This document shows positions 3,650 through 64,000 of a DNA stretch of 64,000 bases, in pieces. The stretch lies in NCBI GenBank assembly GCA_016748015.1, contig JAAOMT010000470.1:87655-151654 (forward strand). The letters run 5' to 3'. The position numbers and the translations under genes are program-made. The stretch comes from Geosiphon pyriformis uo1. Lineage: Eukaryota > Fungi > Glomeromycota. Numbering within the stretch: position 1 is the stretch's first letter; each line of letters starts with the position of its first letter. The notes beneath the pieces are model-generated. The model searched no databases, was not told the origin of the DNA, and worked only from the letters and a program-made list of their open reading frames with translations.

Positions 3650-4560
3650 ATATTGTGTATGCTGGGAAGTTGGTTCTGGTTCCAAGTTTTTGGCAGACAA
3701 TTTGCTTTCTGAGGTTGATTGGTTCCATTCATCTTTGGTTTAGCACTCTAACTTGCATATAGCTGCCAGTTTTACCAGCAGACTTTCAGCTAATGCACAT
3801 ATTTATTTCATAAAAGCTTTGCACCACCAGCTATTAGTTGTCATTTAAAAGTGCCTTTATAATAGACTCTATCCAAGTGTGTTGTGCTTATATTGTAGTA
3901 ATATGGAGACATTAGATCATGTGTTCTCTTATAAGATTGATGATTCTGTTTAATGTCAGTTATTGGAATTCCATATGGATTTCTAAAAGGCGGTTTCTGG
4001 TTTTTCTCATTTTTTTTCAGGCATATTACAACTGTTGTCATCCTGTGTTTCTGACTTTTTTTTGTTCATGACTTTTTATAAGGGTTTTGTTTTTAATGAT
4101 TGGTTTTGTGAGGTGGTTGCCATCTTTTATAATTCCAAGATTGTTGGTTTGGAGATTGTTAAATTTGTGCACTTTCTTAGTCTTGCTTTTAGAAGTAATG
4201 TCTGATTGGTTTGTGCTAAACATTATGCTTATATGGAGAAGAATGAGTTGATTTCTCTTGATGGCTTGGTTTTTGTCTTGGTTTCTGATTTGGCCTTGGG
4301 GTTGTCAACTTGAGTGATCAAATTGCTTGGCATTGCTGATGCTTTTGGTGTTAATTTTGGCTTTTGCAAATCTTGTTTGTTTTTTTCAGGCATAGGTGAT
4401 TCAGTTTCAGTTCACATAGCTGCATAATGTTGTTTTGATCAGCCTAAGTGGCTGGTTACGTGTGGAAAATGCATGATTTATGCCTAGTTTAGATCATTTT
4501 TTTGATGTATAACACTAGGTAGTGTTTGAATCTTACTCGTAAAACAAATAAAAAAAAATA
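3650..4560 (+). mobile_element. 5'-truncated LINE, same family as 52.7-59.6 kb (ORF2 C-terminus, 3'UTR, A-rich tail)
   Basis: Colinear with 58670-59570: WEVGSG, SSLV*H, YFIKALHH, CLYC..DHVFS; 3'UTR GTGGCTGGTTAC; A-rich tail at about 4550. Confidence 0.88.
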
Positions 4561-4569
4561 AATATTGTG

Positions 4570-7140
4570 TTATTTATGTTTTTATTACTCTTTAATTTAT
4601 CTGAATTTACATAATAAATTTTTTTTATAATCAAATTATCTAAATAACCAATATTTAAAGTATTATTAATGCTGTTTATTTTGTTATTTACTTTATTTTT
4701 TTATAATTGTATAAATTTTAACTTATAATACTTAAAGTATTTATAACCAAAAAGCCAACAGATAAGTTAATCAGAATAATAAAAATATTGTTTGTACTTT
4801 TATAGATAAATATAAATAAAAATTGATTTTTCTTAATATTTAAATATATTTTTATATTAATTTTCTCTTTGTTTAAAATACCAATTAAAAAAACTATTAA
4901 TTTTATTATTTTAAAAAATTAATATTGGCAAAAATATATATGAAAAAAAAAAATACAAAAAAATTTTTTAATGTAATCTTTGGTTTTTATTATGGTTAAA
5001 GATTTATAAGAACAAAAAATATATTATAGTTTTTATATTATATTCAAATAAATTAAAACAAATATTTATTAGAAAAAATAATTTCTTAATATTTTATAAA
5101 ACAATTTATTAATTATATATTAATAATAAAAAAGTATTAATTAAATAATTAAAAAAATCAATTAATAATTAAATAAATTATAAATAAGCTAATTACAAAA
5201 ATTAATTTTATAATTACAATTAAAGCAAAGAGTAAAAAAATTTTAAATCTTACCTTTTTATAATAATTAAAAAGATTTCAACAAAAAAAACTTTTTTTTG
5301 TTATTAAAACAATTAAATAAAACATTTTTATAATATTTTTTTTAAATATTAATAATAAAAAGCTATTTTTAACAGCTTTTAAAGCATTTTTTTATTTATA
5401 ACTAAATTTTTTTTAATTAAAATTCTTTTTAAAAACACATTAAGATTAGTTTTAATATTGGTTTTATTTTTTTTAAAAGTTTAAAAATTTTTAATATAGA
5501 TTAATTAATAAGTTAATCTTTTTTGCTTTTATTATTATTATTTTTATTACTTTACAAATAGCAAAAAAAACCAAAAACTCTAAAAAACAGTAATAGTTAC
5601 TTGTATTTACTATTATAACACCAAATTTTTTTTATTATTTTACATTTAATTTAAGTTATTTATATTAAACTTTAATAAAAAATAATAATTGTTTTAATTA
5701 AACATAATAATAAACTTAAACTACTTTATATTAATAAAATTTTTAAATAAAAAACAATATTTACTAAATTATACTTGATAATAAAGAAAATATAGTCGAA
5801 TTTTTATTTAATTTATTAAAACTAACTTTATAAAAAACAAAAAAATTCTGATTGTTTTTATAAATATAAAATATAAAGAAAGAAATTATTAATTTATTAG
5901 TTAATTATTTTAAAAAAACAAAAACAATTTAAAAGACTTTAATTTATTATTATTAGTTTATTTTAAGAAAAAATATTATTAAATATATTAAAATTTATAA
6001 TATTTGTTAAAAAAAAAAACTTATAAAAAAAACATCTATTCTATTTTTATTGATTAATTATTTAATAAAATTAATATTTATATTTTTAAATCTTAAATAA
6101 TAAATTCTAATAATAATAAATATATTATAATAATTATTATCTATTTTATAAATTAAATAATAGTTTTTATTATTAATTTTATTTATAAATATATTTTATA
6201 TTATTATAATTGTTTTTAATAAAAAATATATTTTTTAATATATTAATTAAAAACTTTGTAAAGAATTAAAAAATTTTTTTATTACTTTTAAACAAATAAC
6301 TTAACAAAATATTTTAATAAAGCATTATATAAAATTTTACCCAAAACCAGATAAAAAAAAATTTATAAGACAAAATATTGTTTTTAATTTTGTTTGTTTA
6401 TAAAATTATAAATTATAATATTTGTTTTATAAAAAATAACAATTTTATTAATAAAAATAAATATTAAAACAGTATTTTTTAAAAAAAAATACAAAAATAC
6501 TTTGAAAAAAAAATTTATTATTATTTTTAACTTATTAATAAAAACATAAATAATTGCTTATAAAAAAATAAAAGTGTTTAAAATTTTTTTTTTAAGTATT
6601 GATAATTTAGTTTTAAAATACTATTTAAACAAAAATATTATTTATAATTAACAAAGTTTTGAATAATAATTTTATATCTTATAAAATTAATATAAAATAA
6701 TCTTTAATAATTAATTTTTTTATTATATATAACTTAAAAAATATTATAAATAATCTAATTAGTTATTTATTATAATAATATTAATTATAAATAATATAAT
6801 ATTTTTAAAAGAAAAATATTTTTATTTAATATAAATAATTATTTTTTATATTTTTTACAAGTATTAAACTAAAAATTATTTAAATACTATTTTGATTATT
6901 AAAAAACAAATTACTATAATTAAAAATAATAAAATATATACTATTATTAAACCAAAAAAACCATTATTAAAAAAAACTAATAATAAAATAGATAAATATA
7001 TATTTAAATACATAATAATAATAATTATATTATTGTTTTTCAATTAAATTAAAAAAATAATTAAAACTTATTATATAAAAAACAAATAAAGTTTTAAATT
7101 AACTTAATAAAATTATAAAAGACATAAAAAAACAACTATA
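4570..7140. other. Extremely AT-rich hypermutated block, probably eroded TE sequence
   Basis: Very few G/C, virtually no CpG, no ORF; grades into the eroded kelch copy. Confidence 0.6.
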
Positions 7141-7149
7141 AAGATACAA

Positions 7150-9960
7150 ATAATCTGATTTAATTATAATAAACTTTTAATATTAAAATATTAATATTTT
7201 TATTAGAATTAATTTATATTCAATATTATTATAATATTCTATAACATAATTTTTCTATCTTTTAATATAATTGCAAAATGTTTTACTCTTTTATAGAGTA
7301 TATTAAACAAATTAGAAATACAGTCAGACTTCTATAAAAGAACAAAAACATAATTTTATCAAACATTTATTCAAAATTTATCTTCATATAAGAATAAATA
7401 TTATGTGTTAAATATTAATTATTAATTGAAAAAAAAATTAAAATGTATTGAATTGATTTTATTTTAACTTTCTTTTAAATTAATTACATTAGATCTATTT
7501 TTTTTGATCTTGTTTGTTTTTATATACAACTACTTAACCATTATTGTATTCAAATTTAAGCTTACTAAAACCAAATCTAATATTATTATTATAGGCACAT
7601 TTTTTAACAGATTTGCTAAATTATTACAATATTAAAACTTTTATTCAAAAACAAAAATAAACAGCAGTTAATGATGCTCTTCATAAAAAAATTCATCAAT
7701 ATTTCAAAAATTACTATGGTATAAAACATAATAATATTATTGCTTACTTTATTTATAAATATTCAAAATTTTATATTTTTTGTTTAATTGTCTTTAAAAT
7801 AATTAAAAAATATACAAAGTAGTTGAATATTAAAATTAATAAAATTGATAAAAGATTTATTTGATACAAAAATATTAAATTTTATTATTAAACTAAGCTT
7901 TAAGTATTAGGTAGAACAAATAATTGCAGACACTATTGAATTCAATGATTAACTAATTAAAGAAAAAAGAAAAAAATTGTTAAACTTTTTAGTATACATG
8001 AAAATAAAATGTAATTCTTAAATAGATGGGTTTAAAAATTCAAAAAACAAAATCAATTACATGTTTACTAATTTTATGATAAAGCAGAAAGTGTATTAAC
8101 TGAAAATTTACCAAAAAAATAAAAAAAATTAAAAACCATTATATCCGAATTTAATCCTATTTACATATATAATACTGATAAAACAGAATTATTTTTTCAT
8201 ATGAAACAGAATCAAACACTTGCAAAATGTCGAAATACAGAAAAAAAATTAGTATATTATATTTACTAATTGTTATTGTTATATATTATTGTTATATTAA
8301 ATTAGCTGGGTTTTTTATAAAATAAATTTTAGATTACAATTTTTTTTGCTACAAATTCAACTGGATCTTACAAATTACAATCTTTAGTAATTTGACATGC
8401 AAAAAATTCAAGATGCTTTAAAGGAATTAATACTTTTAACTTACCTGTAATTTACATTCATTTTAATTAACCAATATTATTTTGCACTATTTTTTTCTAA
8501 ATACAGCATTATATCTTCAATTAATGGATGCTGGCATTATCAAATCTTTTAAACGAATATAAATATTTATATTGTCAATATATTTTACATCAATTTAAAC
8601 AAAAAATTAATATTAAACAGTTAAGTAATATAATATATAGTTTTATCTAATATTAATTTATTTCTAAAAAATAAATTAAACATAAAACAAGCAATTGATT
8701 ATGTTGTTCAATCATGATTTCAAGTAACACCTGTTACAATTCAAAACTGTTGGCAAAAAATGAATATTCTTTTCTATAAAATTAGAAATTCAAAAATACA
8801 AAACATCAATTGCTATGAATATATTCAACAATTTACCAACAAATACACAACAATTGGTCAAAAATCTCGAGGATTATACTGTAGCAGTTGATTGGCAACT
8901 GAAAATATTCTTAATGATAATAAAATTGTAAATATGGTTTTAGTCAAAGCTCAAATTGTAACCAATACAAATAATAACTCAGAAGAAGACTTAGAAGAAT
9001 CTCTATCTGCTATAATTATAATTACAAAAGCATATGAAGCATTAAAAAAGATAATTAGATTTAAAGAGAAATTAACAAAAGAAAATTTAGTATAAAAAAC
9101 TAACATTTACTTAGAAAAAAATTATATGAATACGAAAAAATGAAAGAAAATTCTAAAAAACAGAGTAACAATTAATCAATATTTTAATAATAATAATATA
9201 AATAATAATTGATTGATTTAATAAATAAATATAGTTTATTTAGTAATAATTATAAAACTTTATAATAAAACACCTCTATAATAGAACATAATTTGCATGT
9301 TCCAATTGTGTTCTTTTATAGAAGTCTGACTGTATAAGTAAAAGACCAAATATTTTTAATCATATTAAGTTGAGCAATTTCTTGATACAATAACTTATAT
9401 TGATAATTAATATAACTTTGACTATCAATAAAATAAAAAATTTTCAGACATTGGACTATTACTAAAATTTCATTATTTTTTTTACCATTTGTTGCTGAAT
9501 GTCAAGCTACTTTTGGTGCAAGATTTGAAGACATGATTTTTTTCCATAGTGGTGAGAAAACATCGAATAATTGGATTATATTAAAGGTCCAAAGGTCATT
9601 ATTATCTGTTGTATTGTTTATCAAAAAGTTTATCATCTTAGTTTTTCTATCATATAAATAAAAACTAAGAAGTGAAAGAGAAAAATAATTTAGAGAAAAG
9701 AATTGAATAAGAGTTCGACATTTTTGTGATTGAACTGAGTTAAACTTACGTTTTATTAATTAACGTAGCAAAATAGCAACTTTAGAAGTTTAAAATAAAG
9801 TTATGTTATATTAAAATGATTAATCTTGTGAAAATTGATTTTAAACAAAGAAGATGAGCCATCATTGATATGATACATCAACACTCTTGGCTGCCAAACT
9901 TATAATTAATAAAATCATCCATATCTTTACAAAAATTATGGAAAATTTTTTAAACATTAT
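7150..9960 (-). pseudogene. Third copy of the kelch membrane-protein gene, interrupted by pogo and hypermutated
   Basis: 9335-9960 and 7150-7320 align with the reverse complement of 21550-22500; the halves are contiguous across the TA target (ttagaaaTA[pogo]TAtaagta vs ttagaagTAtaagca). Confidence 0.9.
7321..9332 (+). mobile_element. pogo/CENP-B-like DNA transposon, degenerate transposase
   Basis: Perfect 24-bp TIRs CAGTCAGACTTCTATAAAAGAACA (7321-7344 / 9309-9332); TA duplication both sides; DDE_1-like remnants NTDKTELFF, NSTGSYKL, MDAGIIKSFKR, VTIQNCWQK. Confidence 0.93.
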
Positions 9961-10650
9961 GAAGAATTTTTTTAATTATTATATAAGCTAAATGTAAATG
10001 GAAATAGTTTCAAATTCAAGCTAAAAGTGTGAATTAAACCCTTTTATAAAAAAATTATAACTATGATTTAAATTTATATTAGTAATGATAATTAATATAG
10101 ACTTGAAAAAATCTGACATGTTCATCTAGATTGTTTAAATATGTAGAGATTATCTGGAATTAAAATGTCCATGTGTTTTTTTAATTTATTGAAAGTTCTG
10201 AAAATGCACAATCCTCAATTATATTATTTTAACAGGCAAAGATTGTCTAGAACTCAAACATGAGTCGCTGTAAAAATCTGAATGCATAATCCAGTTCTAA
10301 GGTTGCAGATGGTAATCATAACCCTCAGTTGCTTCCAAAAAATATTTTTTATGTCAAAACATGAAAGCTAAATATCTTTTATTAGTGATAATTTTAATAA
10401 TATGTTTAAGGTAAACCTTATCTTGAATTTCATGAGTTGATAATACTGATTTAATTAAACCATTATTTAGAAACTGTTTTATGAATTAATCTGCCAACTA
10501 ATTAATCTCAAGCAAAAAAATAAAAAGCTTTCCGGTATATATCACATTTTGGAAACCAGAAACAACTGATTTAGCCTTATTTTCTGCTCTATCAAAATGA
10601 CACAAATATGACCTCTTGGGAGCTTTTCTATTTGCTCCTCAAATGAATTG
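9960..10650. repeat. Direct-orientation duplicate of 41820-42500 (kelch upstream region plus membrane-gene relic)
   Basis: Colinear match to 41.8-42.5 kb; includes YITFWKPETT (about 10535, +), homologous to YVTFWKPEIT in the 31.7-35.0 kb gene. Confidence 0.85.
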
Positions 10651-11465
10651 TGTATTCCAATGGTTATCTAAGAGTGTTAAAAATAAAGAAAATCGAATTT
10701 TATTTATATATTTATTGTTTTGGGATATTTTTAATTTGTATTTTGCTTTTTAAGATTTTAAAAATTATTTGTATACGATAAATATGCTTATCGTTATCAT
10801 TGTTTAGAACTATTTTATAATAAAAAAATCTTATCATTATATAGATATTAATATTAATTCCAGAATAATTATAGATTATATGGAATTTTTGAAGATTTAA
10901 GGGTCTTTTGTTTCAATTCGTAAAATTGCAGTTAATTTTCACCAGTTCTAAAATCAAAACAAACCACATTTTTGCACTAAATAACAAAACTATGGAAAAC
11001 AAAAACCAAAATTCGAACTATTTGGCAATGTTCAGAACTACACTATTTAGGCCTGCGAACATGCAACTCGAAATATATGCTGAAAATCTATCCGTAATTT
11101 TTAATCCACTTGGTTCTAGCATGGTTAATATTATTCAAATTTTAATAGTTAATTTGATTTGAGGATTATGAGACTGGTAAAAAAGAATAAGCATCTTAAG
11201 TTTATTAAATTCATCAAAATATATTTTAAAATTTTAAATTAGATAAAATTTTTAAATTTATAAAAAAAAGCAAAGCTCTTTCGAATTTTCGAAACAATAT
11301 TTCAAAATTTACATTTAAATTTAAAAATTATGATAAAGTAAGTTTAATAAAATATTATTATAAAAATACTTGTAATTTATGTGATATTTTTAGTTAAAAA
11401 CATTTATGTAATTGTTAATATAGATAGTATAGATAGAAAAATAAATATGTAAAGTTGTTAAGCTC

Positions 11466-11510: not shown

Positions 11511-11825
11511 AAAAATCCAAGGTATTTATCTTTGCTGATAGTTGTTATTTATAGTTTTAAATAGATTGAATATTTAATAACTTTTTTTCATTAAGGTAAT
11601 AGTTTTACATTTGTTTTTTTTTACATTGGTTCTGAATTGATATCATAGTTAATATCACATTAACTACTTTTCATGAGTTAAATTTGAATCAAGAAATTTA
11701 TATTCTAAAATGCAAAAATGAGATTAAAGCAAAAAATATAATGCTACTAATAGTTTGAAAAGTATTTTTAATATAATTTCTTTTAAATAATCCGAATTCC
11801 AATTAGGGTCAATAAAAAAACAATT
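11511..11825. repeat. Apparently identical inverted copy of about 47535-47849 (BTB gene 3' flank)
   Basis: Reverse complement matches base for base as far as I can read; both copies abut gaps. Confidence 0.9.
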
Positions 11826-12521
11826 NNNNNNNNNNNNNNNNNNNNNNNNNNNNNNNNNNNNNNNNNNNNNNNNNNNNNNNNNNNNNNNNNNNNNNNNNNN
11901 NNNNNNNNNNNNNNNNNNNNNNNNNNNNNNNNNNNNNNNNNNNNNNNNNNNNNNNNNNNNNNNNNNNNNNNNNNNNNNNNNNNNNNNNNNNNNNNNNNNN
12001 NNNNNNNNNNNNNNNNNNNNNNNNNNNNNNNNNNNNNNNNNNNNNNNNNNNNNNNNNNNNNNNNNNNNNNNNNNNNNNNNNNNNNNNNNNNNNNNNNNNN
12101 NNNNNNNNNNNNNNNNNNNNNNNNNNNNNNNNNNNNNNNNNNNNNNNNNNNNNNNNNNNNNNNNNNNNNNNNNNNNNNNNNNNNNNNNNNNNNNNNNNNN
12201 NNNNNNNNNNNNNNNNNNNNNNNNNNNNNNNNNNNNNNNNNNNNNNNNNNNNNNNNNNNNNNNNNNNNNNNNNNNNNNNNNNNNNNNNNNNNNNNNNNNN
12301 NNNNNNNNNNNNNNNNNNNNNNNNNNNNNNNNNNNNNNNNNNNNNNNNNNNNNNNNNNNNNNNNNNNNNNNNNNNNNNNNNNNNNNNNNNNNNNNNNNNN
12401 NNNNNNNNNNNNNNNNNNNNNNNNNNNNNNNNNNNNNNNNNNNNNNNNNNNNNNNNNNNNNNNNNNNNNNNNNNNNNNNNNNNNNNNNNNNNNNNNNNNN
12501 NNNNNNNNNNNNNNNNNNNNN

Positions 12522-13401
12522 GATCTTCATATAAAGTTCCAGGTAAAATTCTCGCAAATGGTTTTACTTTGTGATAAAAGTCAACTGAAGATATGTTAAA
12601 GAAGCGGATTAAAGGTAGAAGTCTTTCAATGGATTCCTTAATGGTGTTAAATTTTTCATCTGTCCAGTTAAAAACGTTTTTCATCTGAATATTGTTATCC
12701 AATTTAGCAGCTCCCCATTCCACAATCTTTTCCCATATTTCAGATTCTTCTATATTTAGATCATCCCGCTTTAAAATTGAGGAAAGTGCATTTTCACTAA
12801 GGGAGGTAAAATCTTGCGAGTTGAAGACTATAGCTGGATTGTTAGCAGCTATTTCGGTGCAGAATTTTTGTAACTTTTTGAAAGAATCATGCATGAATGA
12901 AGTTTTCTGCAAAGTGGCGAAATTTTTTTCTAGCTCTTTTGCATGGTGTTTAATTAAATAGTCTTCAAGGGGATCAATGAGATTCTCTAGAATAAGCTCG
13001 TCAGCGGTAACAAGCAATTCTAAAATGGTAGATACTCCATGTTTATCAAGAGAGATTTCGCCGTTATAAATATATCTGTGCAGGAAAATAAAACATATGA
13101 ATTTATGTTTGTCAAAATACTTTAAAGCAAATAAACACCCTTACCTGAGAATTATTTTAAAAATTTTAGGTGAAATGTTAGGTTTATCAAAGATAATGGT
13201 ATTGTTTTCCCTTTTAACCCAATTACTAGAGAGTGCTACAGTAAAATACGGTGATCTTGCTGCTAAAATTTGCGAATGAGCAAGGAAAGTTCTGCTATTA
13301 GGCGCTTCTCCAACAACAATCTTAACATCAGAGAAATTCTGGCTATCTAGTAAATTCCCGAAATCTTTGGATAAAGCGTGAAAGTGTTGTTGGGGTGACA
13401 T
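12522..13401 (-). CDS. BTB/POZ-BACK(-TLDc) protein, copy A; 3' part lost in gap
   Basis: Exon 1 13401-13145, GT-AG intron 13144-13076, exon 2 runs into gap; FSDVKIVVGE, AHSQILAARSPYF, LLPLIRFFNISS; paralog of 45564-47059. Confidence 0.92.
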
Positions 13402-14449
13402 TAGTAAAATATATAAAAAGCTTTGAAATATTAATATTTCGATCTGTAGTGTTTAAGCAAAGGCATTTTCACAAAATCAAATCAGCGCTGAATTTTATAC
13501 TACATGTAAAATATGATCGACGGGTGATCTCATATAAGTTCTGCCATATTAACTTTCAAATTTTTTTTCATTTTTAAACAAAAATTTAATAATATTAAAA
13601 TATAATATAATAATCGAAATTTCAAAACAAATAAAACAAGATTAAACAAAAAATTGTAATAAAAATTTTATTTAAATCGGGTGTTCACATTTTGTAGATA
13701 TTATTATATTTTTGTTATTTTTATAACAACAATGGCCAATTAGTTTTTTCTATAATTTGGCAACTTACGAACAATTTAACAATATATATTGAGAGTTTGA
13801 GAACTTGCCACTAGTTTGGCTAAAATTTGTGTCATTGCTATTTTTATTGCCAAATTATAGAATTGAATAAGTTTCTAAATACAATTTAACAAAATTGACT
13901 TTTGATTTAATAAATAATTATGCATGTATAGCTTTCACAATTTGTTTTAATAAAATTTAATAAAAATTTTATAAAATAAAAATGTTATGCCATTTAAATT
14001 CACATCATGCTTTAAAACTTTTATTAAATTAAAAAATAAGTATCTATATATTATCAAAAAAAAGAAATTACTAATTATTCGAATAAAAATACATTTTAAT
14101 TGAAGAAAAAATTACATACATAAAAGATAAAAATAACACCTCAATTAATTTGAACCAAAGTAATGCTTAATTTTTACACGATAAAAATTCTATTTAACGA
14201 TTAATTTAATTTCTTAACTTTAAAGGAGTTTGATTTGATTTTGTGTTCTAAATACATTGCCAAACCCCAGAAAACGATTGAATTAAATTCATATAAGTAA
14301 ATTTTAGTTTGAATAATAATATTTTTTTATTAAGTCCTACTCTCAAATATATTATAAATACATGATGTATTTTATTTCATTAAAATTGAACCAAGAATTG
14401 ATAAGATTTTAAAATTGCTAATTTTATCAGTGATTACGGAAAGATCAAC

Positions 14450-20490: not shown

Positions 20491-21551
20491 TTCGGTCCTT
20501 ATATCTTTAATTTTTCCTTTTTATCTGATAAAACTAGATAAAAAATGTTATTTTCAACGAGAAATATTTATTTATTCTATTTCAGTAACCGGGAAAACTA
20601 ATTAAAATTAATTATATTTTCACTCGATTAAAGGTAATATCATTGCAAATTCTTCGCTCATTATTATTTTGTTGCCATTTTCAATACAAAATAAAGCTGC
20701 TTTTATATTTAAATTTAAATCATTTCTCATACTATTTAACAACTCCGAAAAAGATAATTGCTTGAACAAATTTATGAAATGACAGGGTTCTAAGATAGAA
20801 AAAATTATAGAAATATAGAAGAGCTCAAGATGTTTATATAACTAGCTCTAATTATCTTTTCATGGAATAGGAATATTATTTTAAATAAAAAATTAGCTTA
20901 ATATAATTATGATGTTTTAAAATTTTATAAAGTAATATAAAATTAGTTAGAGAAAAGAAATATATATACAAGAAGCTTCTTTGGATTAATGAAATAGATG
21001 ATAATAAAATACAAATAGAGGAGATTTTAATTTATATTCTATTTCAATAAAAATATTAAGCTGACACATAGTTCTATAAAGTTTAAATTAAAGAGATTTC
21101 ACTGGGTCTTTCTTTACAGTTTTCATCTATTGAATTACCTATCTTACAATATAAACAATTAATTTTACAAAAATCAAATAATATAATTTAAAAACAGAAA
21201 TTCTGACATATTAAATTCTGCTAAAAATATCTTTAAAACTAACCAAGCCAAAAGCTCACCTTTGCCGTCTTTTTTCAGTGTAAAAGAGAGAAAAATTGAC
21301 GTTTAAAGATAATTCCGGACGATCTGTACCCGTTTAAGCAATCTAAAGAGGTATGTGGTTTCGGGGCGTTTCAGATTTCTTAAAGGTTTAACCGAGTTTA
21401 AATTAATATTGTTACAATAGTAAATAAATACAAATTTAAAAATAGAATTAGCGTTTTTTTAAATTTTTTATAAAAGGTACTTAATTGCAAACTTTTAACT
21501 TAAAAGTTCAATTACATTCAACTAATATAATATTCAAAGAAATTTTTTATA

Positions 21552-23525
21552 ATGTTTAAAAAGTTGTCCACGATTTTTATAAAGATATGGATGATTTCGT
21601 CGATTGTAAGTTTGACAGCCGAGAGTGTTGATGTATCATATCAACGATGGTTTGTCTTATTTTTTTTAAATCAATTTTTCCCAAGATTAATCAATTTAAT
21701 ATGACTTGACTTTATTTTAAACCTCTAAAGTTGCCATTCTGCTACGTTAATTGATAAAACGTAAGTTTAACTTAGTTTATTTCACAAAAATGTGGAACTC
21801 TTATTTGATTCTATTCCCTAAGTTTTTTTTCTCTTTCACTCTCTAGTCTTTATTTATACGGTGGAAAAACTGATTTCGGAAAGAAATTAGTAGACAATAC
21901 AACAGATAGTAACGACCTCTGGACCTTAGATATAACACAATCATTCGATGTTTTCTCACCACCGTGGAAAAAAGTCGAGTCTTCAAATCTTGCACCAAAA
22001 GTAGCTCGACATTCAGCAACATATGGTGGAAAAAATAATGAAATTTTAGTTATATTTGGAGGTGAAACAGGGACTAGCCCAATGCCTGAAAATTCTTTAT
22101 TTTATTTCAATACCACTTCATCAGAATGGTCAAATCCAGATACGACTATAATTGATAAATCAGACTCACCATCTGTGCGTCGTCTTGCACATGTATCTAC
22201 AACAAGCATAAATAACTCAATGATATATTTTTTTGGTGGTCAACGTTATAATAATTATCAGTATGCAGAATTGTATCAAGAAATTGCTCAACTCGATACA
22301 ATTAAAAATACCTGGTCTTTTGCTTATACTTCTAAATCGTCTAATTTGCTCTATGGAAGAATAGGACATTCTGCAACCCTATTAAGAGATGGAAAAATTT
22401 ATGTTATTGGAGGTTATAACAACGGTGACTATAAATTAATCCCTATGGAGAATGTTGATATTTTTGATACTAAGAATTTATTGTGGTCGAGTCAGGTACT
22501 GGATATGAAGAAATTTCATGAATATACATAAAGTTTTCATTTTCTCAAATTTGTTTTTAACAATTTTAGAAGGTTGATGGAGATATCCCACTACCTCGTA
22601 GATTTCATGCAGCTGTTGCAAGTAAGCAGTTTAAAAACCTGATTCCCTTATTTTTTGACATTTCAGTCATTTAATTATAGAAAACTTTGAAAATCTTTTT
22701 TATAGATTCGAATAGCACGTCTATAATAATATTTGGTGGTGCAGATGTTTATTTATTAAACTGCTACAATGATCTTTATACTCTAGACACATTAACTTCA
22801 CCAATGAAATGGTCTTTTCAATCAATGAAAGGAAAAATACCTGGTGGAAGATCTGATTTCAGTATGACATTGGTGGGTACTAATATCATTCTTTTGCATG
22901 GTAAGTAAAAATAAATTAATACTTTGTTTTTTGGAAATTTATTTTTTCCAATTCTAATTATGCTTCTTTTTCATGAATATCTTTTTAAAAAAAAAAGGAT
23001 ATGTGGTAAGCATCTAAATTTTCCACTGTTTTCCAAATAATTAGATATTTAATATGATTTTTTTTACCTAAATTTAAACTTAAGCCTAATCCTACCACAG
23101 CACAATATTTTTTCGTCTTGGATACGACAACTTGGGTCTGGGAAACTTCATATACACCAAAAAACCTAGAATTGACATGGCCACCATTTAAATCTTTGCT
23201 CACGCCAAACTCTACGTCAAATTCTACATCAAACTCTACGTCTCAAAACGCAAATTCATCAAAAAATATTCCTCCTTCATCATCAACAGCAAAAAATAAA
23301 GTTATAATAATAGCGTTGTCAATCGCAGCAGTAGTGATAATAATTTTTACATTAATTGGGATATTTTATTTCTTTATAATTCGAAAACCCCATCGTTCCA
23401 CCCTACCTACAAACCTCGATCATTCCTATGTTGATCACAATTCGGCACATCAACCACTTTCGGATCGCACACAGACGGGCAGGGACCGAGTATCTGCACA
23501 TGAAATTCGAAATAATAATAAATAG
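21552..23525 (+). CDS. Kelch-repeat (galactose-oxidase-like beta-propeller) type-I membrane protein, copy A, about 490 aa
   Basis: Seven exons joined in frame via GT-AG: 21552-21649, 21731-21760, 21847-22495, 22570-22621, 22706-22900, 22998-23005, 23085-23525; signal-like N-terminus; repeated HSAT/YxxGG/W kelch motifs; S/T/N-rich stalk; TM helix; short tail. Confidence 0.9.
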
Positions 23526-24599
23526 CACTTTTGAGGAATAGATTCTGTATTCAGAAGATAGAATTTCATCACTAATATAGAAATACATTCACACGATGAT
23601 GAATAATATTCTTGTTCAATATTAGTCTCCACATAATTTACTTATCCTAATAAGTAGCTTAAAATTACAGGTAGCCATGCAGTTAGTACCAATATGGCAT
23701 TAAAAATTTTAGAGAATGTTAAAAGTTTTTTGCCTTAATAAAATTAACTAGTATTTTTGAAGTAAAAAAGAACAAGTTTATATAAAAGATTATTTTAATT
23801 AATAACCTCACTAAACTGCTTAATAATTATACATGATAAAATTTTAATGATCTGTAATTTTCATTTTAACACACTATTAGCCCCTGATAAATGTAATATC
23901 AATATTTCAAAATTCTATAATCGTAAAAGATAAAAAGCTCATTGATACATAAAAATCATTAGTATTTTATTTATACACATCAGTTTTTTACGAAAAATTT
24001 AATCACCTACATCATTTATATATCTGTAAGGATAGATATGGATTCAAGATAAATTTTATTTAGAATATAAAGTTTATCATATAATACTGAAATCTCGAGA
24101 TTTGATTGAATATTATAGAAAATCACATTCTAATATTCAACACTTTTTTGGTCATTCTTTTGAACACTTAATGAATAAAAATAATTGATGTAACTAAAAA
24201 ATGATAATATGACTGAAAAATTAAAGCAAGTAAAAAATATTTTGATAATTTTCTTAAAAACATGATTAACAATTGCAGATAGTGATATTTTTTTAAAAAG
24301 TGTCAATTTTTAGAAAAAAAGGCTTTTAGTTGGTTTGTGTATTTTTTATAGAATTGACTATTAAATTTGCACAATTGATAAAATTTTTACCAGACTTAAA
24401 ATATTTAATAATGTTATAGCTTATTTAATCCATCAAATAATAAAGTTTAACTTGAAAAGGTTAAAAATAAAATATTTGACCAATTTTGATTATTGGAATA
24501 ATAACAAGTGCTAATGGTAAATTTTGACGTAGAAAAATAATAATTTAATCATATATTACAATTTTATTACATAATTACAGCTGCAAAATTTGTTGATTT

Positions 24600-29649: not shown

Positions 29650-30450
29650 GTAAATCAACTTTTTTTATCTGTAACAAGAAACACACCTTTAATGGCAATA
29701 TCCAAAGTCGATATTGTGATTCTACGTTTCCCTTTTCAAGAGTCTCATTAACATCGTACCCATAATAACAACAATATCCAAGTTGATGTTGTGCTTCGGC
29801 GTTTCCCTATCCTCCTGCTTTGGTATACAATCTAGCCGCTTCTTCAAAATTCTCGGTAACACCTTCCCCATTATGATGACAATATCAAATTGATTTTTTG
29901 CTTCTGTATTTCCCTTTTCTGCTGCTTTGGTATACCATCTAACCACTTATTCAAGATTCTCATTAACACCGTACTCATTGAAATAGCAAGTCCAAGAGGG
30001 AATTCAATGTTGGAGCTATTATCAGGCCATCCCAACATTTTTTATAAAGTGCAACATATTCACTTGGTGTGTTATCGATTGGCTTTTCTCGGTAACCATA
30101 AAGAATTTTTCCTAAAATGGAAATTTATTTTAAGATAAATATAAAAATGAATAATTTTCTTACACCCAATATTAGAAGGTATAATACTTTTGAAGGGTGG
30201 GTGGTTGCCCACTTGTCAATTCCCATAAAGAACCCCAAGAGCGTAAATGTGTATCTTGTATACATTAAATGCAACTTGTCCCATAGGCTGGGTGGTTGAG
30301 CCGAAGAGGTCATCCAAATTTTATTGAAATGCCAAAGTCAGCTATTTTTATTGTTTTATTGTGCACCAAAATATTAATGAATTTAAAGAAATTAATCTTG
30401 TCATAGAATCAAATTTAAAAAATTTTTGCATGTCGACATTTCGCTGCAAC
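29650..30450 (-). pseudogene. TKL-type protein kinase plus Sel1-repeat pseudogene
   Basis: NILVHNKTIKIADFGIS (about 30330-30375), IYALGVL/WELTSGQPP, REKPIDNTPSEYVALYKKCWDG, then Sel1 units (VRWYTKAAEKGNTEA); frameshifts and deletions. Confidence 0.88.
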
Positions 30451-34994: not shown

Positions 34995-35244
34995 AATTTT
35001 TTAAAAGTTATTATGTTTGCAGAATAATTTTTAAATGGGTTGGCTCTTTTGTTTTCCTAATTTTTCAATTTTTTATATCTTTTATTATCGAAATTATTGG
35101 AATTTAAATCCAGTTAAGATTATATCCATCTCATACTAACTAGTTTGCAAAAAAAAAAGATTACTAGAAGGATCTAAAAATACTAATTCTTTGATATTGC
35201 CTTTTAAAGTCGACCAATAGAGTTTATGCAAATTAGCCTAATCA

Positions 35245-35850
35245 CAAGCACAAAATTAACTTGGATGTTACTATTATAATGGGAAAGGTGTTATCGAGAA
35301 TTTCGAAGAAGCAGTCGGATGGTATACCAAAGCAGTAGAAAAGGTAAATACAGAAGCACAATATCAACTTGGATATTGCCATTATAATGGAGAAGGTATT
35401 ACCGAGAATTTTGAAGAAGCGGCTAGATGGTAGCCAAAGTAGCAGAACAGAGAAATGCAGAGGCACAACATCAACTTGTATATTGCTATTATTTTGGGTA
35501 TGGTGTTAATGAGAATCTTGAAGAAGCAGTGAGATGGTATACCAAAGCAGCAGAGCAGAAAAACATAGACGCCTAATGTATACTTGGGATTCTGTATTTC
35601 AGGGGCATGGTGTTACCAAAAATTTTGAGAAAGGAATTGAATCGAAGAAATGTGAAGGTGCAATATGAACTTGGGTCTTGCTATTATAATGAGGAAGGAG
35701 TGAAACAGAATAATGAAATAGCATTTGAATAGATAACTAAAGCAGCCAAGCAAGAAATGAACTTGCCCAATATGCACTTGGATGTTGCTATTATAATGGG
35801 TATTGTGTTGCCGAAAAATCTTGAGAAAGCAATTGAATGGAATCAAATAT
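35245..35850 (+). pseudogene. Sel1-repeat pseudogene fragment (about 5 repeats)
   Basis: 36-aa units AQYQLGYCHYNGEGITENFEEAARW*, AQHQLVYCYYFGYGVNENLEEAVRWYTKAAEQ with stops; inverted homolog of 29700-29990. Confidence 0.88.
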
Positions 35851-38950: not shown

Positions 38951-40418
38951 TTTTTTAATGGTACTTATAAAATTATAACATAATAATTTTTAAACTAATT
39001 TTTTTTTAAAAACTCTTATTTTTTGATCTCTTAATAGTGTTTATATATTAATTATTTTTACATGTCAAATTTTACCACTATTTGTTAGTATTCTAAAAAA
39101 ACCAATAATGAAATTGCTCAAAAACTTTATTTCTATTTATTCAAACAACTTTAACATTTGATAAATTTACTATTTGTGCAAAAATAATTAACCAATTTTA
39201 TAAACAATATTTAAACAAACCAAAAACTCCATTTTTATAAAGTAAGCACTTAAAAAAAATAATGTCGCTATTTAAAATTTTTAATCATTTTTTAAAAAAC
39301 AATAATCAAAATTTTTTTACGTGCTTTAGTTTCTCTATTATTTTCAGTCTCGTTATCACATTATTATTTTAGTCACATTGTTATTTTTTATTCATATTAT
39401 TTTTTCAGTTATCTCAAATTATTTGATTACATTATTAATTATTTAGTTGATTTTTCATTTTATTAATCATTTTCTAATCATATTATTATTTAACAATTCA
39501 TTTGTTAAATATTTTTGATATATATAAAATCAAATTTTTATCTTTTTCCTGAGAATATTTTTTTAGGGGATATTGAATTTATAGATTTTTAGCTTTAATT
39601 CTAATTCATTTATTTACCAGTCAGAATTGTATTAAAATAAAAATAAGGATTATTTGAAAATTTGTACTTTCTTACTATTATTTATTATTATATTATCTAA
39701 TCGATAGAAAAACTTTAAAATTAAGATACTTTTTTTAATCTTTGAAGAACAATTTTGTAATCAATAAGTGTTCAAAATAAAGGTCGCATTTTTGACTATC
39801 AGGATATGATTCTCTATAATATTTAATTAAATTTCGACATTCCAGTATTACAATAGTAAGCTTTAATATGATAGATATTTCACAGATAAACTTTATCTTA
39901 AATCCGCATCAGATACATAATAAATATATAAAGGATCCATGTCATCGCATTTTTGTTGAGAAATCAAATATATGTATAATATTTAACTAATAAATATTAT
40001 TTATCAATATGCTTTCCATAATATTTTATTTCTTTTGGGATTCCATTTATCATTGGTTCATAGTGTGTTAAAATGGCAATTACCGATTTACAAATTTTTA
40101 TTATATACAGTTATTAATCAGTTTAATTATATTATTAAAATATAATTACTGTAATTAATAACTAGTTTTAAGGATTAAAGTAATCTTTTATATAATGCTA
40201 TTCTAATTAACTATTTATTGGGACTAACTACATGGCTACCAGTAATTTCAAACTACTTAATAGGATAAGAGAAACAAAGATATTTAAATTCTAACAAAAT
40301 TTTGCAAATTCAGTTTATTCATTGTGTGAATATATATCTATATTAGTGATGAAATTTTATATTTGAAATTTAGAATCTATCATTATTTATGATTATTTCA
40401 AATTTCATGTGCAAATTC

Positions 40419-41822
40419 TCAGTCCCTCCCTATCCGTATACTAGCTGAAAGTGGTTCTTGTGCCGAACTGTGATCGAGATAGGATTTACCGAGGTTTGTA
40501 GGGGGGCTGTAACGAAGGGGTTTTCGAATTTTGAAGAAGTACAGTAACCCACTTAGTGCAAAAATTATTATCCCTCCTGCGACTGATAATCCTATTACTA
40601 AAGCTTTGTTTGTTGTTTTTGTTGTTGAATGAGGAATACCTATTGATGAATTTGAAATTAATGTGGAATTTACGTTTTGAAACGTAGAGTTTGATTTAGA
40701 GTTTGACGTAGAGTTTGGCGTGAGTAAAGATTTAAATGGTGGCCATGTCAATTCTAGGTTTTTTGGTGTATATGAAGTTTCCCAAACCCAAGTTGTCGTA
40801 TCCAAGACGTAAAAATATTGTGCTGTGGTAGGATTAGGCTTAAGTTTAAATTTAGGTAATCAAATCATATTAAATATCTAATTATTTGGAAAATAACCGA
40901 AAAACAGTGGAAAATTTAGATGCTTACCACATATCCTTTTTTTTTAAAAAAGATATTCATGAAAAAGAAGCATAATTAGAATTGGAAAAAATAAATTTCC
41001 AAAAAACAAAGTATTAATTTATTTTTACTTACCATGCAAAAGAATGATATTAGTACCCACTAATGTCATACTGAAATCAGATCTTCCACCAGGTATTTTT
41101 CCTTTCATTGATTGAAAAGACCATTTCATTGGTGAAGTTAATGTGTCTAGAGTATAAAGATCATTGTAGCAGTTTAATAAATAAACATCTGCACCACCAA
41201 ATATTATTATAGACGTGCTATTCGAATCTATAAAAAAGATTTTCAAAGTTTTCTATAATTAAATGACTGAAATGTCAAAAAATAAGGGAATCAGGTTTTT
41301 AAACTGCTTACTTGCAACAGCTGCATGAAATCTACGAGGTAGTGGGATATCTCCATCAACCTTCTAAAATTGTTAAAAACAAATTTGAGAANNNNNNNNN
41401 NNNNNNNNNNNGTGGTGAGAAAACATCGAATGATTGTGTTATATCTAAGGTCCAGAGGTCGTTACTATCTGTTGTATTGTCTACTAATTTCTTTCCGAAA
41501 TCAGTTTTTCCACCGTATAAATAAAGACTAGAGAGTGAAAGAGAAAAAAAACTTAGGGAATAGAATCAAATAAGAGTTCCACATTTTTGTGAAATAAACT
41601 AAGTTAAACTTACGTTTTATCAATTAACGTAGCAGAATGGCAACTTTAGAGGTTTAAAATAAAGTCAAGTCATATTAAATTGATTAATCTTGGGAAAAAT
41701 GATTTAAAAAAAAAGAAGACAAACCATCGTTGATATGATACATCAACACTCTCGGCTGTCAAACTTAGAATCGACGAAATCATCCATATCTTTACAAAAA
41801 TCATGGACAACTTTTTAAACAT
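40419..41822 (-). CDS. Kelch-repeat type-I membrane protein, copy B; most of exon 3 lies in the gap
   Basis: Same exon structure as copy A; exon 5 peptide identical; divergent stalk, TM and tail; about 570 bp missing at the 20-N gap. Confidence 0.88.
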
Positions 41823-42099
41823 TATAAAAAATTTCTTTGAATATCATATAAGTTAAGTGTAATTGGTGATAGTTTCAATTTTAAGCTAAAAGTGTGAATT
41901 AAATACCTTTTATAAAAAAATGCTTTTAAATTGATATTAGTAATAATAATAATTAATATAGACTTGAAGAAATCTGATGTGCTCTTCCAGATTGTTTAAA
42001 CGGGTAGAGATCGTCCGGAATTAAAATGTCCATCTGTTTTTTAATTTAAAAATTAAATAAATCAAAACGATAGAAAGTTCCGAAAACGCACAATCTCAG

Positions 42100-43150
42100 T
42101 TACATTACTTAAATAGGTAGAGATCGTCTATAACTCGCCGTAAAAATTTAAATGCATAATCCAGTTATAAGGTTGCAGATGGTCTTAATGGACTTCCAAA
42201 AATTATTTTTAAATGTCAAAACATGAAATATAAAATCCTTTATTAGTGATAATCTTAATAATGGGTTTAATGTCAGGTTTATTTTGAATTTCATGAGTCA
42301 GTAACACTGATGTAATTAAAACATTATTTAGAAACTGTTTTATAAAAAAATCCGCCAAATATTAATCTCAAGCAAAAAAAAAGACTTCCAGTATATATCA
42401 CATTTTGGTAACCAAAAACAACTGATTTGGCCTTATTTTCTGCTTTATCAAATGACGCAATATGACCTCTTGGGAGCTTTTCTATTTGCTGCTCAAATGA
42501 ATGGTGGTGTGTTGTATCTTTTGTAGGACAAATCTAAAATTGTAAAAGATTAACAAATTCAAATATTATTACTTCGAATTAAATATAACACAGCGTATAA
42601 TAGTGCTTTATGGTAGATCATTTAACAGAACTCTATATAGAGGAAGAAAATGCACTTGTTGTGAATTTTAATAATCAAAATGGAATCTAAAATGATGTAT
42701 TAAATGTCTCGAATTGAAATTGAAATTGAAATTAGAATGCATATTATGGCGCTGATTTTACTACCTTACAAGCCAATACTTTTTAGCTGCTACATTAAAA
42801 AAAAAAGATTATAGTTTCTATCAAGATTTTTTAATGAAAGGTTATTAAGATCGAACTGAATAAAGGAACCGCTATTTGGGTAAAAATTTGTAGCTTTAAT
42901 TAATTCTTTGAAAATTCATTTTTAATACTACTTATCCCCTTATTATAAAGAAGCAATTTTGATCAGAGCGTGAAATAGAAATTACTTATTTCGAAATAAT
43001 TCCATTCCCCAATAATAATATTTCCATCTATCATCTCGATTCGGATAAGAAAACTGCGATAGTAGAAATTATATTTAAAAATAATATTTTATTGTCGCTC
43101 AATACAATCTTATAAAAGATTAACAGCATAATGAAATCATCAAGAAAATA
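42100..43150 (+). pseudogene. Relic of the multipass membrane gene family, divergent from kelch B
   Basis: YITFW*PKTT, LQANTF, TYPLII, EITYF..NNNISIYH, FIVAQYNLIKD correspond to motifs at 33.3-34.2 kb. Confidence 0.65.
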
Positions 43151-44600: not shown

Positions 44601-45563
44601 TACAATCTTTATCTTTTTGACTAAATTTGCTTGCTTTTTAATACTGCTTCCACAATGACATTTCTTAAAATGCTCTAGTTTTTTAGAAAAAATGATATAA
44701 AATATAACACAACTTTTTATATAAAAATTTAAAAGTTAAATCCCCAATTTACCAAAAAATATTGCCGCAATGTAAAATAACAATTATCTATCAACTAGAG
44801 TTAATTTTTAATATAGATATATAAAATAAAAATTAATAGTAATATATTATGAAAATAATTTTATGCAAAAATTATCTACGTTTATTCCCAACCGATACTG
44901 TATATGCTTTTTTTTCTTTCTTATTTTATTTACATCATTATCATTTATACGTTCCATGCCATAGAATCCGTTCAAAATAATCCATTTGACTATATCTAAG
45001 TCTTTAAATTAGATTCTTAATCATTTGTTGATTACTTAAAAAATCTTTATTATTCGTTGTCAGTTACTATATTTTTATTTCATATCTGCTGTTAAAACTA
45101 GATTGAAGATATATTCAGCAACGAAAAATATTTTTTTTATACTATTTAATTCCTTCCCTAATCAGGAAACTAATTAAAAAATAATTTATATTCCTATTTG
45201 CTTAGAGGTTCTTCCTTAGTGGTGAGAGGGAGAAATCATTGCAAATCATCACTCATTGTCTTTTTGCTATTTTTCATATAAATAAATAAGTTTTTCTACA
45301 TCACTTTTCAAATTATATGCTCCTATAATTAGTTGGGTGATGATTTAAATTCTAATCCGATCGAAAAAGCAATTTTAACGAAAATAATTAAGAATTCCAT
45401 TTCTGATTTCGATTAGCCTGAAAAAAGTTCCTTGTTCCCCTACATGCACGACAGAAATCTTGTTAATAATAACAAATCACCTGCCGATCACATATTTGTA
45501 TAAAAGTCTCTAAAAACTGCATATTGAAGTATTAATATTTCATAGCTTTTTTATATCTCACCA

Positions 45564-48949: not shown

Positions 48950-49166
48950 ATAGAATTTTTGGTGTTTATCTTTCATATTAGGAGCAATTAATTTAGAATT
49001 TGCTGAGGTTTTCCGGGAAAGATAGAATTTTTGGTGTTTATCTTTTATATTAGGAGCAATTAATTTGGAATTTGCTGAGGTTTTCAGGGAGAGGTAGGAT
49101 TCTTGGTATTTATCTTTTACATTAAAGGCAATTAACTTGGAATTTACTAAATTTTTTTGGGAAAGG
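48950..49166. repeat. 72-bp tandem repeat, three copies
   Basis: Units start at 48950, 49022, 49094; minus strand reads as an open 24-aa repeat LSRKTSANSKLIAPNMKDKHQKFY. Confidence 0.9.
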
Positions 49167-63605: not shown

Positions 63606-64000
63606 CATTTGCGGGAAGTTTCAGCTTTTGTATTACTGGATATGAAGAAGATCTGTAAGCGGTGGTGACTGGCCATAAGCCATTTGCGAGAAGTTTCAGC
63701 TTTATATTACAGTATACAAAGGAAGATCTGTAAGCGGTGGTGACTGGCCATAAGCCATTTGCGAGAAGTTTCAGCTTTTGTATTACTGGATATGAAGAAG
63801 ATCTGTAAGCGGTGGTGACTGGTCATAAGCCATTTGCGAGAAGTTTCAGCTTTATATTACAGTATACAAAGGAAGATCTGTAAGCGGTGGTGACTGGCCA
63901 TAAGCCATTTGCGAGAAGTTTCAGCTTTTGTATTACTGGATATGAAGAAGATCTGTAAGCGGTGGTGACTGGCCATAAGCCATTTGCGAGAAGTTTCAGC
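63606..64000. repeat. 75-bp satellite with alternating A/B monomers (150-bp higher-order unit), runs off the window
   Basis: Units start at 63606, 63681, 63756, 63831, 63906, 63981; 57-bp shared core plus an 18-bp segment alternating TGTATTACTGGATATGAA / ATATTACAGTATACAAAG. Confidence 0.95.

Follow-up and report, generated by a model that had tools for sequence, protein, structure and literature searches.

Domain-limited C-to-T hypermutation around a dead kelch gene and a pogo-like transposon in Geosiphon pyriformis

In Neurospora crassa and other Pezizomycotina, RID-dependent repeat-induced point mutation (RIP) leaves near-pure C:G>T:A changes on both strands, nonsense codons in duplicated genes and AT-rich blocks, and leaks into adjacent DNA. 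Outside the ascomycetes, C>T hypermutation of transposons has reportedly been seen in basidiomycetes, in work of 2012 attributed to Horns et al., in a context unlike that of Neurospora and with a signature said to be centred on CpG-containing trinucleotides. A second Neurospora pathway, dependent on Dim-2 and on the H3K9 methyltransferase Dim-5, mutates single-copy DNA flanked by repeats, is set off by a nearby duplication in the sexual phase and follows chromatin state, not target sequence (PMC12543289). In Zymoseptoria tritici, a Dim2-dependent mitotic mutator produces a more than tenfold, methylation-linked excess of C>T changes in vegetative growth, which stays in methylated transposon regions, with more than 98% of events at CpA and CpG spared (PMC8016269). 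A kingdom-wide screen recovered RIP-like signatures only from ascomycetes (PMC12543289), and a Rhizophagus paper states that none had been detected in Gigaspora or Mucoromycotina (PMC8647823); RIP-like hypermutation is accordingly held to be confined to ascomycetes. Here we describe a locus that bears on that view, a dead kelch gene copy that is split by a pogo-like DNA transposon and borders an AT-rich block in Geosiphon pyriformis. It lies in a stretch of 64,000 nucleotides, called the window (positions 87655-151654 of contig C732, in an assembly of 128.3 Mb and 792 contigs). Our search of the literature found no paper linking Geosiphon or arbuscular mycorrhizal fungi with such hypermutation.

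The genome has a C>T hypermutation that operates over chromosome domains ranging from about 5 kb to more than 12 kb in length, in all sequence contexts and on both strands. Inside a domain everything is hit, be it transposons, AT-rich repeats or host-derived DNA (the dead kelch copy and the BTB paralogs on contig C696), while paralogs or family mates of the same age outside the domains are left alone. In the window, the domain starts with the AT block, at about 4.5 kb, and takes in a kelch fragment and the pogo-like element; since the last duplication of the locus, its limit has been the right end of the element, at 9.2-9.4 kb. Its parts, and the intact kelch gene used as template, are the following, in window positions:

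4563-7153, no strand: AT block, GC about 9% (0.07-0.10), made up of high-copy AT-rich repeats, left neighbour of the dead kelch fragment
7154-7320, minus strand: D-left, a dead kelch fragment of 167 bp homologous to 22495-22330 of copy A, the most eroded host-derived piece
7321-9332, plus strand: hypermutated pogo-like DNA transposon of the HTH_Tnp_Tc5 and DDE_1 family, 2012 bp, with terminal inverted repeats and a target-site duplication
9165-9400, no strand: boundary of post-duplication hypermutation in the window copy, placed by the drop in transitions derived on its lineage
9335-10652, minus strand: D-right, the dead kelch gene's 5' part with the region upstream of it, defined by alignment, with moderate and mostly pre-duplication erosion
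21286-23600, plus strand: kelch copy A, the intact template, with kelch-repeat exons and a transmembrane tail (Pfam kelch families on the open reading frames 22082-22531 and 22687-22908)

The dead kelch copy, D1, is read on the minus strand as 10652-9335 followed by 7320-7154, the two parts being separated by the element at 7321-9332. Its homology with copy A stops at 7154, opposite an exon-intron junction of A (22495 is followed by GT, in the context CAG/GTACTG). The string CTGACTCGACCACAATAAA occurs once, in copy A (22477-22495, minus strand), and its eroded counterpart is located at 7154-7172. D-left has 44 differences from A, of which C>T and G>A account for 34, at 34 of the 54 reference G/C sites (0.63), and no CpG is left in it. 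Against A and B, a second kelch copy of the window, these two changes are found in D-right at 0.27 of reference G/C sites between 9599 and 9335, again at 0.27 between 9899 and 9600, at 0.33 between 10199 and 9900 and at 0.15 between 10652 and 10200. Reverse transitions relative to A and B are present at merely 1-4.5% of the A/T sites of D1. An earlier, sequence-only reading of the window, which had described the dead copy as differing from A mostly by AT-ward transitions, is borne out by these counts, and the positions it gave are correct. It had also proposed to polarise the substitutions in a three-way alignment, by dinucleotide context and by distance from the transposon. With the C662 paralog as outgroup to the clade of A, B, the C733 copy and the dead copies, the stem of the dead copies is seen to have transitioned 25.5% of ancestral G/C sites to the right of the element and 54.5% to the left, compared with 1.7-1.9% of A/T sites. 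The C:G>T:A changes of D1 are thus derived on the dead-copy lineage, and the gradient is present. The AT block (7-10% GC, left of 7154) was also considered as a fully eroded 3' half of the kelch gene. It was aligned locally in a purine/pyrimidine alphabet, whose letters transitions cannot alter, and scored 34; controls scored 27-35 and a known homologous fragment, the positive control, 121, and the candidate was rejected.

Two further contigs carry paralogous copies of the locus. The copy D3, on the 6.8-kb contig C45, repeats the left side of the locus (AT block, left kelch fragment, left part of the element), and the copy D2, on C696, repeats its right side (right part of the element, right kelch part, next 0.8 kb). 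Each is about 93% identical to the window, the AT block being homologous to C45 at 82-89% identity, and the two internal deletions of D-right relative to A are common to D1 and its sister on C696. The possibility that C45 and C696 are haplotigs, or parts of one locus, was rejected: they are 94% identical to each other in their overlap, from which it follows that they are separate copies, and BTB genes are differently arranged around them. Where all three copies overlap, 43 derived states are common to all, 20, 17 and 7 are private to single copies and 2-7 are shared by pairs, so that the split of D1, D2 and D3 is close to a trichotomy.

The existence of three paralogous copies allows the damage to be separated into a part that precedes the duplications and a part that follows them. 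Shared, pre-duplication C>T changes affect.51-.55 of G/C sites in the left fragment and then.38-.40,.31,.28,.23 and.10-.14 across the element. In the right kelch part they affect.25-.27 of G/C sites, and this part presumably began to decay before the element inserted. When the outgroup is included, 54% of the D-left sites are changed in C45 as well, and each copy adds private changes at another 11-15%. C>T changes private to D1 occur at about 10% of G/C sites, both in the left fragment and along the entire element; in D-right they amount to about 1%, compared with 12-13% for changes private to C696. Transitions derived in D1 number 38 within 8012-9164 and 10 within 9400-10912. On either side of position 9206, the D1 lineage gained 20 changes at 172 G/C sites and 10 at 518, respectively (odds ratio 6.7, Fisher p=9e-7), while the D2 lineage is without a step, having gained 25 at the same 172 and 83 at the same 518 sites, or 14-16% throughout. 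The fading of the damage to the right that the sequence-only reading had described is therefore real as an overall fall, from 63% beside the AT block to 15%, but the post-duplication part of it in D1 ends as a step, at the right end of the element, and not as a smooth fade.

Over the 2.2 kb from 9206 to 11455, D1 has gained 10 changes at 518 G/C sites (1.9%) and D2 has gained 83 (16%), an 8-fold difference. Sister copies being by definition of equal age, this difference is not due to age. The polarised part of the changes private to D2 contains 18 GC>AT transitions, no AT>GC transitions and 5 transversions. The time since the split of D1, D2 and D3, expressed on a clock as 0.7-0.8%, matches the 0.8% of private changes other than C>T in the normal copies of the pogo family described below. 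The asymmetry between D1 and D2 supports a process that is not homology-triggered.

The pogo-like element has perfect terminal inverted repeats of 23 bp (TIR, CAGTCAGACTTCTATAAAAGAAC) and is enclosed by a TA target-site duplication at 7319-7320 and 9333-9334; the HTH_Tnp_Tc5 and DDE_1 Pfam domains were found on intact members of its family. Its GC is 18.5%, compared with 28.5% for the family consensus, and transitions have changed 36% of the consensus G/C sites; T>C is found at 0.9% of A/T sites. From left to right, the transition rates of its thirds are.49,.35 and.19. The family alignment contains 20 further copies and the two sister copies of D1. Thirteen copies with a GC of 25-28% were taken as normal (L035, L041 and L050 are intermediate and were grouped with them), and private changes were scored at sites unanimous among the other normal copies. 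The normal copies are 2.1 kb long and 97-98% identical to the consensus; their private C>T/G>A changes affect 1.5-3.9% of G/C sites and their other private changes 0.4-2.0% of sites, with a mean of 0.8%. The corresponding values are 32% and 1.7% for the D1 element, 21.6% and 0.74% for copy L029, 31% and 1.8% for L028, and 53% and 2.2% for L034. The GC of the copies spans 28% down to 10.9%, the latter in L034, and some have lost up to 63% of their G/C sites.

Per site, GC>AT transitions outnumber AT>GC transitions by a factor of about 7 in the normal copies and of 36 to more than 100 in the eroded ones, and C:G>T:A makes up 84-89% of all substitutions in the hypermutated copies (74% in the oldest, L026). 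At the same or almost the same clock age, C>T changes are therefore 7 to 10 times as frequent. Since substitutions other than C>T do not scale with the C>T load across the copies, a specific C>T process is indicated and not age. The excess over a neutral AT bias, at similar levels of other substitutions, is that of 32-36% in D1 over 2-4% in normal copies. Two structural differences concern the copies of this locus: around 8456 (element position 1136) the window element is without some 120-140 bp that are kept in the C45 and C696 sisters and in most family members, a private deletion, and in the C45 sister (L054) about 70 extra bp are present just inside the left TIR, at about 5230-5320, followed by a second partial TIR-like string.

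A position effect is apparent in the surroundings of the eroded copies. The four unrelated, heavily eroded pogo copies have immediate flanks of at most 16% GC (one flank of L026 is too short to be scored), and for the D1 element the left flank has 9% GC and the right flank 23%. A steep internal fall in damage is present in the D1 element alone; in copies that are AT-rich on both sides the fall is 1.0-1.7-fold. These data support a real left-to-right effect at the D1 locus, from a single case. Copy L028, with a GC-normal left flank of 1 kb, was considered as a counter-example to spreading, with the gradient intrinsic to the element; this was rejected, both of its immediate 500-bp flanks being AT-rich. 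A copy of the AT-block repeat adjoins the most eroded pogo copy (C718:2071021-2071629).

The mutational signature was determined in the transposon and in host-derived DNA. In the window transposon, C>T affects.33 and G>A.39 of sites, and the rates by 3' context are.31 for CpA,.35 for CpC,.38 for CpT and.56 for CpG, in agreement with the claim that all four dinucleotides are hit on both strands. When five eroded pogo copies are taken together, the rates by 5' base are.56 for T,.47 for C,.35 for G and.31 for A, and those by 3' base are.63 for G,.46 for C,.43 for T and.40 for A. For the host-derived spectrum an unmutated sister served as the reference, giving 359 events; here the rates by 5' base are.31 for T,.29 for C,.21 for G and.20 for A (p=3e-4), and those by 3' base are.55 for G,.30 for C,.21 for A and.21 for T. 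Non-CpG events make up 288 of the 359 (80%) in host-derived DNA and about 87% in the transposon, and the view that this is not CpG-only decay holds. The signature is therefore one of about twofold preference for CpG and about 1.5-fold preference for a 5' pyrimidine, with no preference for CpA; no CHG preference of the plant chromomethylase type is found among the C>T events. The normal pogo copies have the same context shape at about one tenth of the rate (TpC.064 compared with.033-.042, CpG.10 compared with.05), and non-CpG cytosines are raised 6-15-fold over this background in the hypermutated copies. Mutations on the same strand cluster into runs in several copies (z between -1.4 and -3.2) and also among the changes private to D1 (z=-2.2); for the larger, unsaturated set private to D2, z=0.

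When compared with the described systems, the process shares with RID-dependent RIP the traits listed at the outset. It differs from it in the absence of a CpA preference and the mild preferences for CpG and a 5' pyrimidine, in that many coeval repeats, long and almost identical, have been left alone and sister duplicates carry unequal damage, and in that the host is a fungus of the Mucoromycota/Glomeromycotina type without a known sexual cycle and with no demonstrated RID. Classical RIP indices drift towards RIP with increasing damage and pass their thresholds solely in the AT block (TpA/ApT 1.11, (CpA+TpG)/(ApC+GpT) 0.74), the composite index being negative elsewhere; they are poorly suited to a context-broad process. 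Like the Dim-2/Dim-5 pathway of Neurospora, the process mutates non-repeat DNA within or between repeats, apparently according to chromatin state: mutation follows the domain and includes non-repeat DNA, the kelch fragment and the BTB paralogs being hit, and the step at 9.2-9.4 kb is present on one lineage only. In that pathway the trigger is a nearby duplication in the sexual phase; in this genome no Dim-2 orthologue has been identified. For a fungus that lacks regular sex, the Zymoseptoria mutator offers the nearest functional parallel, but CpA, its almost exclusive target, is here among the least-hit 3' contexts and CpG, which it spares, is the most-hit. The hypermutation of basidiomycete transposons is likewise a non-ascomycete C>T process; it is reported to centre on CpG trinucleotides, whereas four fifths of the events here are non-CpG. 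In the decay by 5-methyl-CpG deamination known from animals, plants and CpG methylation of the Rhizophagus type (PMC8647823), CpG is likewise the most mutable and a depleted dinucleotide; here it accounts for only 13-20% of events, with the rise at non-CpG cytosines given above. The sequence-only reading had called the process distinct from both RIP and CpG deamination. This is overstated, in that it overlooks the two described ascomycete processes that work by way of heterochromatin or 5-methylcytosine and not by homology alone (PMC12543289; PMC8016269).

Several gene copies in the window and elsewhere bear on which DNA is spared and which is hit:

40300-42506, minus strand: kelch copy B, inverted with respect to A, with balanced private changes and a run of 20 N (41392-41411) that conceals about 580 bp
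11513-13455, minus strand: BTB/BACK/TLDc paralog 1 (BTB1), with 696 N at 11826-12521
45511-47849, plus strand: BTB/BACK/TLDc paralog 2 (BTB2), with an intact open reading frame of 408 amino acids (45833-47059) containing Pfam BACK and TLDc

The private transitions of kelch copy A are balanced (6 GC>AT and 6 AT>GC), with a CpG observed/expected ratio of 0.86; across A, B and the C733 copy there are 3-6 private GC>AT and 4-7 private AT>GC transitions, and the CpGs are kept. BTB1 and BTB2 also differ by symmetric transitions (4/4, 10/16 and 12/16 per 300 bp) and by many transversions, but the frame of BTB1 cannot be judged across its gap, since the long open reading frame spans the 696 N. The argument that near-identical linked duplicates are spared is weak, in that neither the two kelch copies nor the two BTB paralogs are near-identical over their whole length. 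The identity of A and B is 100% at 22542-22841 of A, 98% up to 23141 and 85%, 73% and 69% in the next three bins of 300 bp, and it has fallen to 65% by 24.3 kb. Blocks that are inverted and 100% identical (22542-23032 with 40901-41391 for kelch, 11513-11825 with 47537-47849 for BTB) each end exactly at a run of N (41392-41411, 11826-12521 and 47850-48152), so that part of the near-identity could be due to gene conversion or assembly; this arrangement suggests either gene conversion beside gaps or collapsed or duplicated contig ends. A and B are thus old paralogs that share a short tract of about 1 kb, either converted or mis-assembled, and are a poor test of a homology trigger. The wider claim, that repeat homology alone does not explain the pattern, stands on the nearly untouched coeval pogo copies and the 8-fold difference between sister duplicates.

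On C696, two BTB paralogs have, relative to BTB1 and BTB2, C>T/G>A changes at 23-44% of G/C sites and changes in the opposite direction at 3-10%. With BTB2 as the unmutated reference, the homologue of its open reading frame (C696:32343-34199; L055/L021) is changed at 29-44% of G/C sites and contains 12 premature stops, 11 of them of the types TGG>TGA, CAA>TAA, CGA>TGA/TAA or CAG>TAG. Erosion on C696 and balance in the window mean that host-derived DNA is hit inside a domain while its paralogs outside are spared. More kelch paralogs, L007, L008, L009 and L012 (on C716, twice on C675, and on C362), have shared internal deletions and look degenerate, with a shift towards AT (as in GGAGGT>AGAGTT); these, too, may be eroded copies of the gene.

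The explanation that we favour, and that as a whole we hold to be probable, though not by much, is a domain-limited C>T hypermutation that is linked to heterochromatin and methylation and triggered by position. A heterochromatin domain would be seeded by AT-rich repeats and a transposon, and cytosines within it would be deaminated at a high rate, most likely by way of dense cytosine methylation, not limited to CpG, that one of the genome's DNMT1-like enzymes would deposit. As each C>T change raises the AT content, the state would reinforce itself and creep outwards, which would yield the fall in damage from left to right and, in time, blocks of 7-10% GC. The trigger would be position and not the pairing of repeats. 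Such a loop of heterochromatin-linked methylation and deamination would be the most economical mechanism, unproven as it is.

A number of points weigh against this explanation. The step through heterochromatin and 5-methylcytosine is one that we infer, and a methylation model would not predict the 1.5-fold preference for a 5' pyrimidine. The survey of Rhizophagus covered CpG methylation only (PMC8647823), non-CpG methylation being putative in the group, and some of the DNMT1-like loci described below contain stops and are not assigned to a class. The left-right gradient comes from one locus. The unmutated pogo copies L032, L039 and L052 also touch AT-rich flanks, which means either that position is insufficient or that those insertions are too young. 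Finally, all of the mutated DNA here is also repeated, which leaves some room for a component of homology.

That component would be the whole of the matter if the process were classical RIP, with homology recognised before meiosis by an enzyme of the RID type, the kelch damage being leakage from flanking repeats and the unmutated copies either post-dating the last sexual cycle or having escaped by chance. The near-purity of C>T/G>A on both strands, the stops created in a duplicated gene, the repeated nature of every mutated sequence (transposon, AT-rich repeats and segmental duplicates), the end of the post-duplication tract of D1 where homology to other pogo copies ends, the indices of the AT block and the presence of DNMT1-like loci without a replication-foci domain would all agree with it. 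We nevertheless regard it as unlikely: the 13 coeval normal pogo copies carry only 2-4% C>T, the sister duplicates were not mutated together (1.9% and 16% over 2.2 kb), CpA is the least or second-least mutated context, and the signatures and toolkit are reported as ascomycete-confined (PMC12543289) and the signatures as undetected in Gigaspora and Mucoromycotina (PMC8647823). Slightly harder to credit is a DNA cytosine deaminase, AID/APOBEC-like or of another family, acting on unmethylated C and either recruited to transposon chromatin or working on transient single strands. It would account for the 5' pyrimidine preference in both transposon and host DNA (TpC.31-.56 and CpC.29-.47, compared with.20-.35 for ApC and GpC), for the same-strand runs in several copies and in the D1-private set, and for a relative excess that is larger at non-CpG than at CpG sites. 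The preference is, however, just 1.5-fold, far below the strong motifs of known APOBECs, the strand runs are absent from the larger C696-private set, and neither of the two deaminase families searched, APOBEC_N and NAD1, has a Pfam match, the blank for NAD1 being weak.

Two further alternatives were weighed. Under a regional deficit of repair, ordinary C>T damage, from spontaneous deamination or from ultraviolet light at dipyrimidines in a light-exposed fungus, would be left unrepaired in compact, untranscribed AT-rich chromatin. The context profile of hypermutated copies resembles the background of normal copies scaled 6-15-fold, the dipyrimidine bias fits damage of the ultraviolet type, and the boundaries fall where gene-bearing DNA begins; however, a 10- to 20-fold gap in rate between adjacent kilobases is large for heterogeneity of repair alone, and some unmutated copies adjoin AT-rich flanks, so that we consider this improbable. 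Last, the eroded copies might merely be older, having decayed as ordinary pseudogenes and transposons under an AT-biased neutral spectrum with CpG deamination. The genome is AT-rich (over the whole window, GC is 24.8% and CpG observed/expected 0.57), normal copies also have about 7-fold more GC>AT than AT>GC transitions per site, and the pre-duplication erosion of D-right is just about 2.4-fold above the clock-normalised neutral expectation. This is very improbable and already contradicted by the 8-fold difference between sister lineages of identical age; in addition, L029 combines 0.74% of other changes with 21.6% C>T where normal copies combine 0.8% with 2-4%, and 80-87% of events are non-CpG.

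The locus provides a clean internal control, in that three paralogous copies of a segment, an intact gene template and a 20-copy transposon family separate age from process and pre- from post-duplication damage. Host genes caught in a domain are destroyed, and the domain has edges. This bears on the control of transposons without regular sex in fungi of the arbuscular-mycorrhizal type, on the origin of AT-rich isochores and on the turnover of the BTB and kelch families. Beyond the domain-limited hypermutation itself, we tentatively raise the possibility, for which we would give rather less than even chances, of a self-propagating cytosine mutator that targets domains, needs neither repeat pairing nor meiosis and turns transposon islands and trapped host genes into expanding deserts of 7-10% GC; in this early-diverging fungus, a RIP-like defence outside the Dikarya would then have arisen independently or survive in an ancestral form, with a signature of its own.

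The sequence-only reading had also proposed a search for methyltransferases and deaminases, of which the first part gave candidates. A profile search of the genome with PF00145 found seven loci. One, on C371, is a DNMT1 locus with a replication-foci domain (RFD) 3.3 kb upstream of the catalytic match, and two, on C646 and C692, are DNMT2-like. The other four have DNMT1-like catalytic domains (PF00145) without a detectable RFD, and are candidates, on the basis of their sequence, for a non-canonical cytosine methyltransferase:

C657:788280-789372, strand not given: DNMT1-like catalytic locus, no RFD
C657:820713-821336, strand not given: DNMT1-like catalytic locus, no RFD
C666:681025-681548, strand not given: DNMT1-like catalytic locus, no RFD
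C702:1327528-1327926, strand not given: DNMT1-like catalytic locus, no RFD

As to deaminases, APOBEC_N (PF08210) and NAD1 (PF18778), the only two families searched, gave no match in the genome; the result for NAD1 says little, as its model matched in 0 of 14 control genomes. Short Logan contigs from one sample mix the paralogs and are uninformative on variation between nuclei.

The window as a whole is a mosaic in which blocks of 25-39% GC are interleaved with blocks of 7-17% GC. For the BTB/BACK/TLDc protein of 45833-47059, the nearest clusters come from Mucoromycota. Within the AT block, the parts at 5050-5650 and 4404-4563 belong to a very abundant AT-rich repeat, with 5540 candidates at a first look and scored matches of 74-83% identity. 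Tandem repeats are also present: an array of 107-bp repeats at 35243-35842 has an inverted partner at 29735-29996, 5.3 kb away, three units of 72 bp are located at 48950-49165, and an array of 75-bp units extends from 63606 to the end of the window at 64000.

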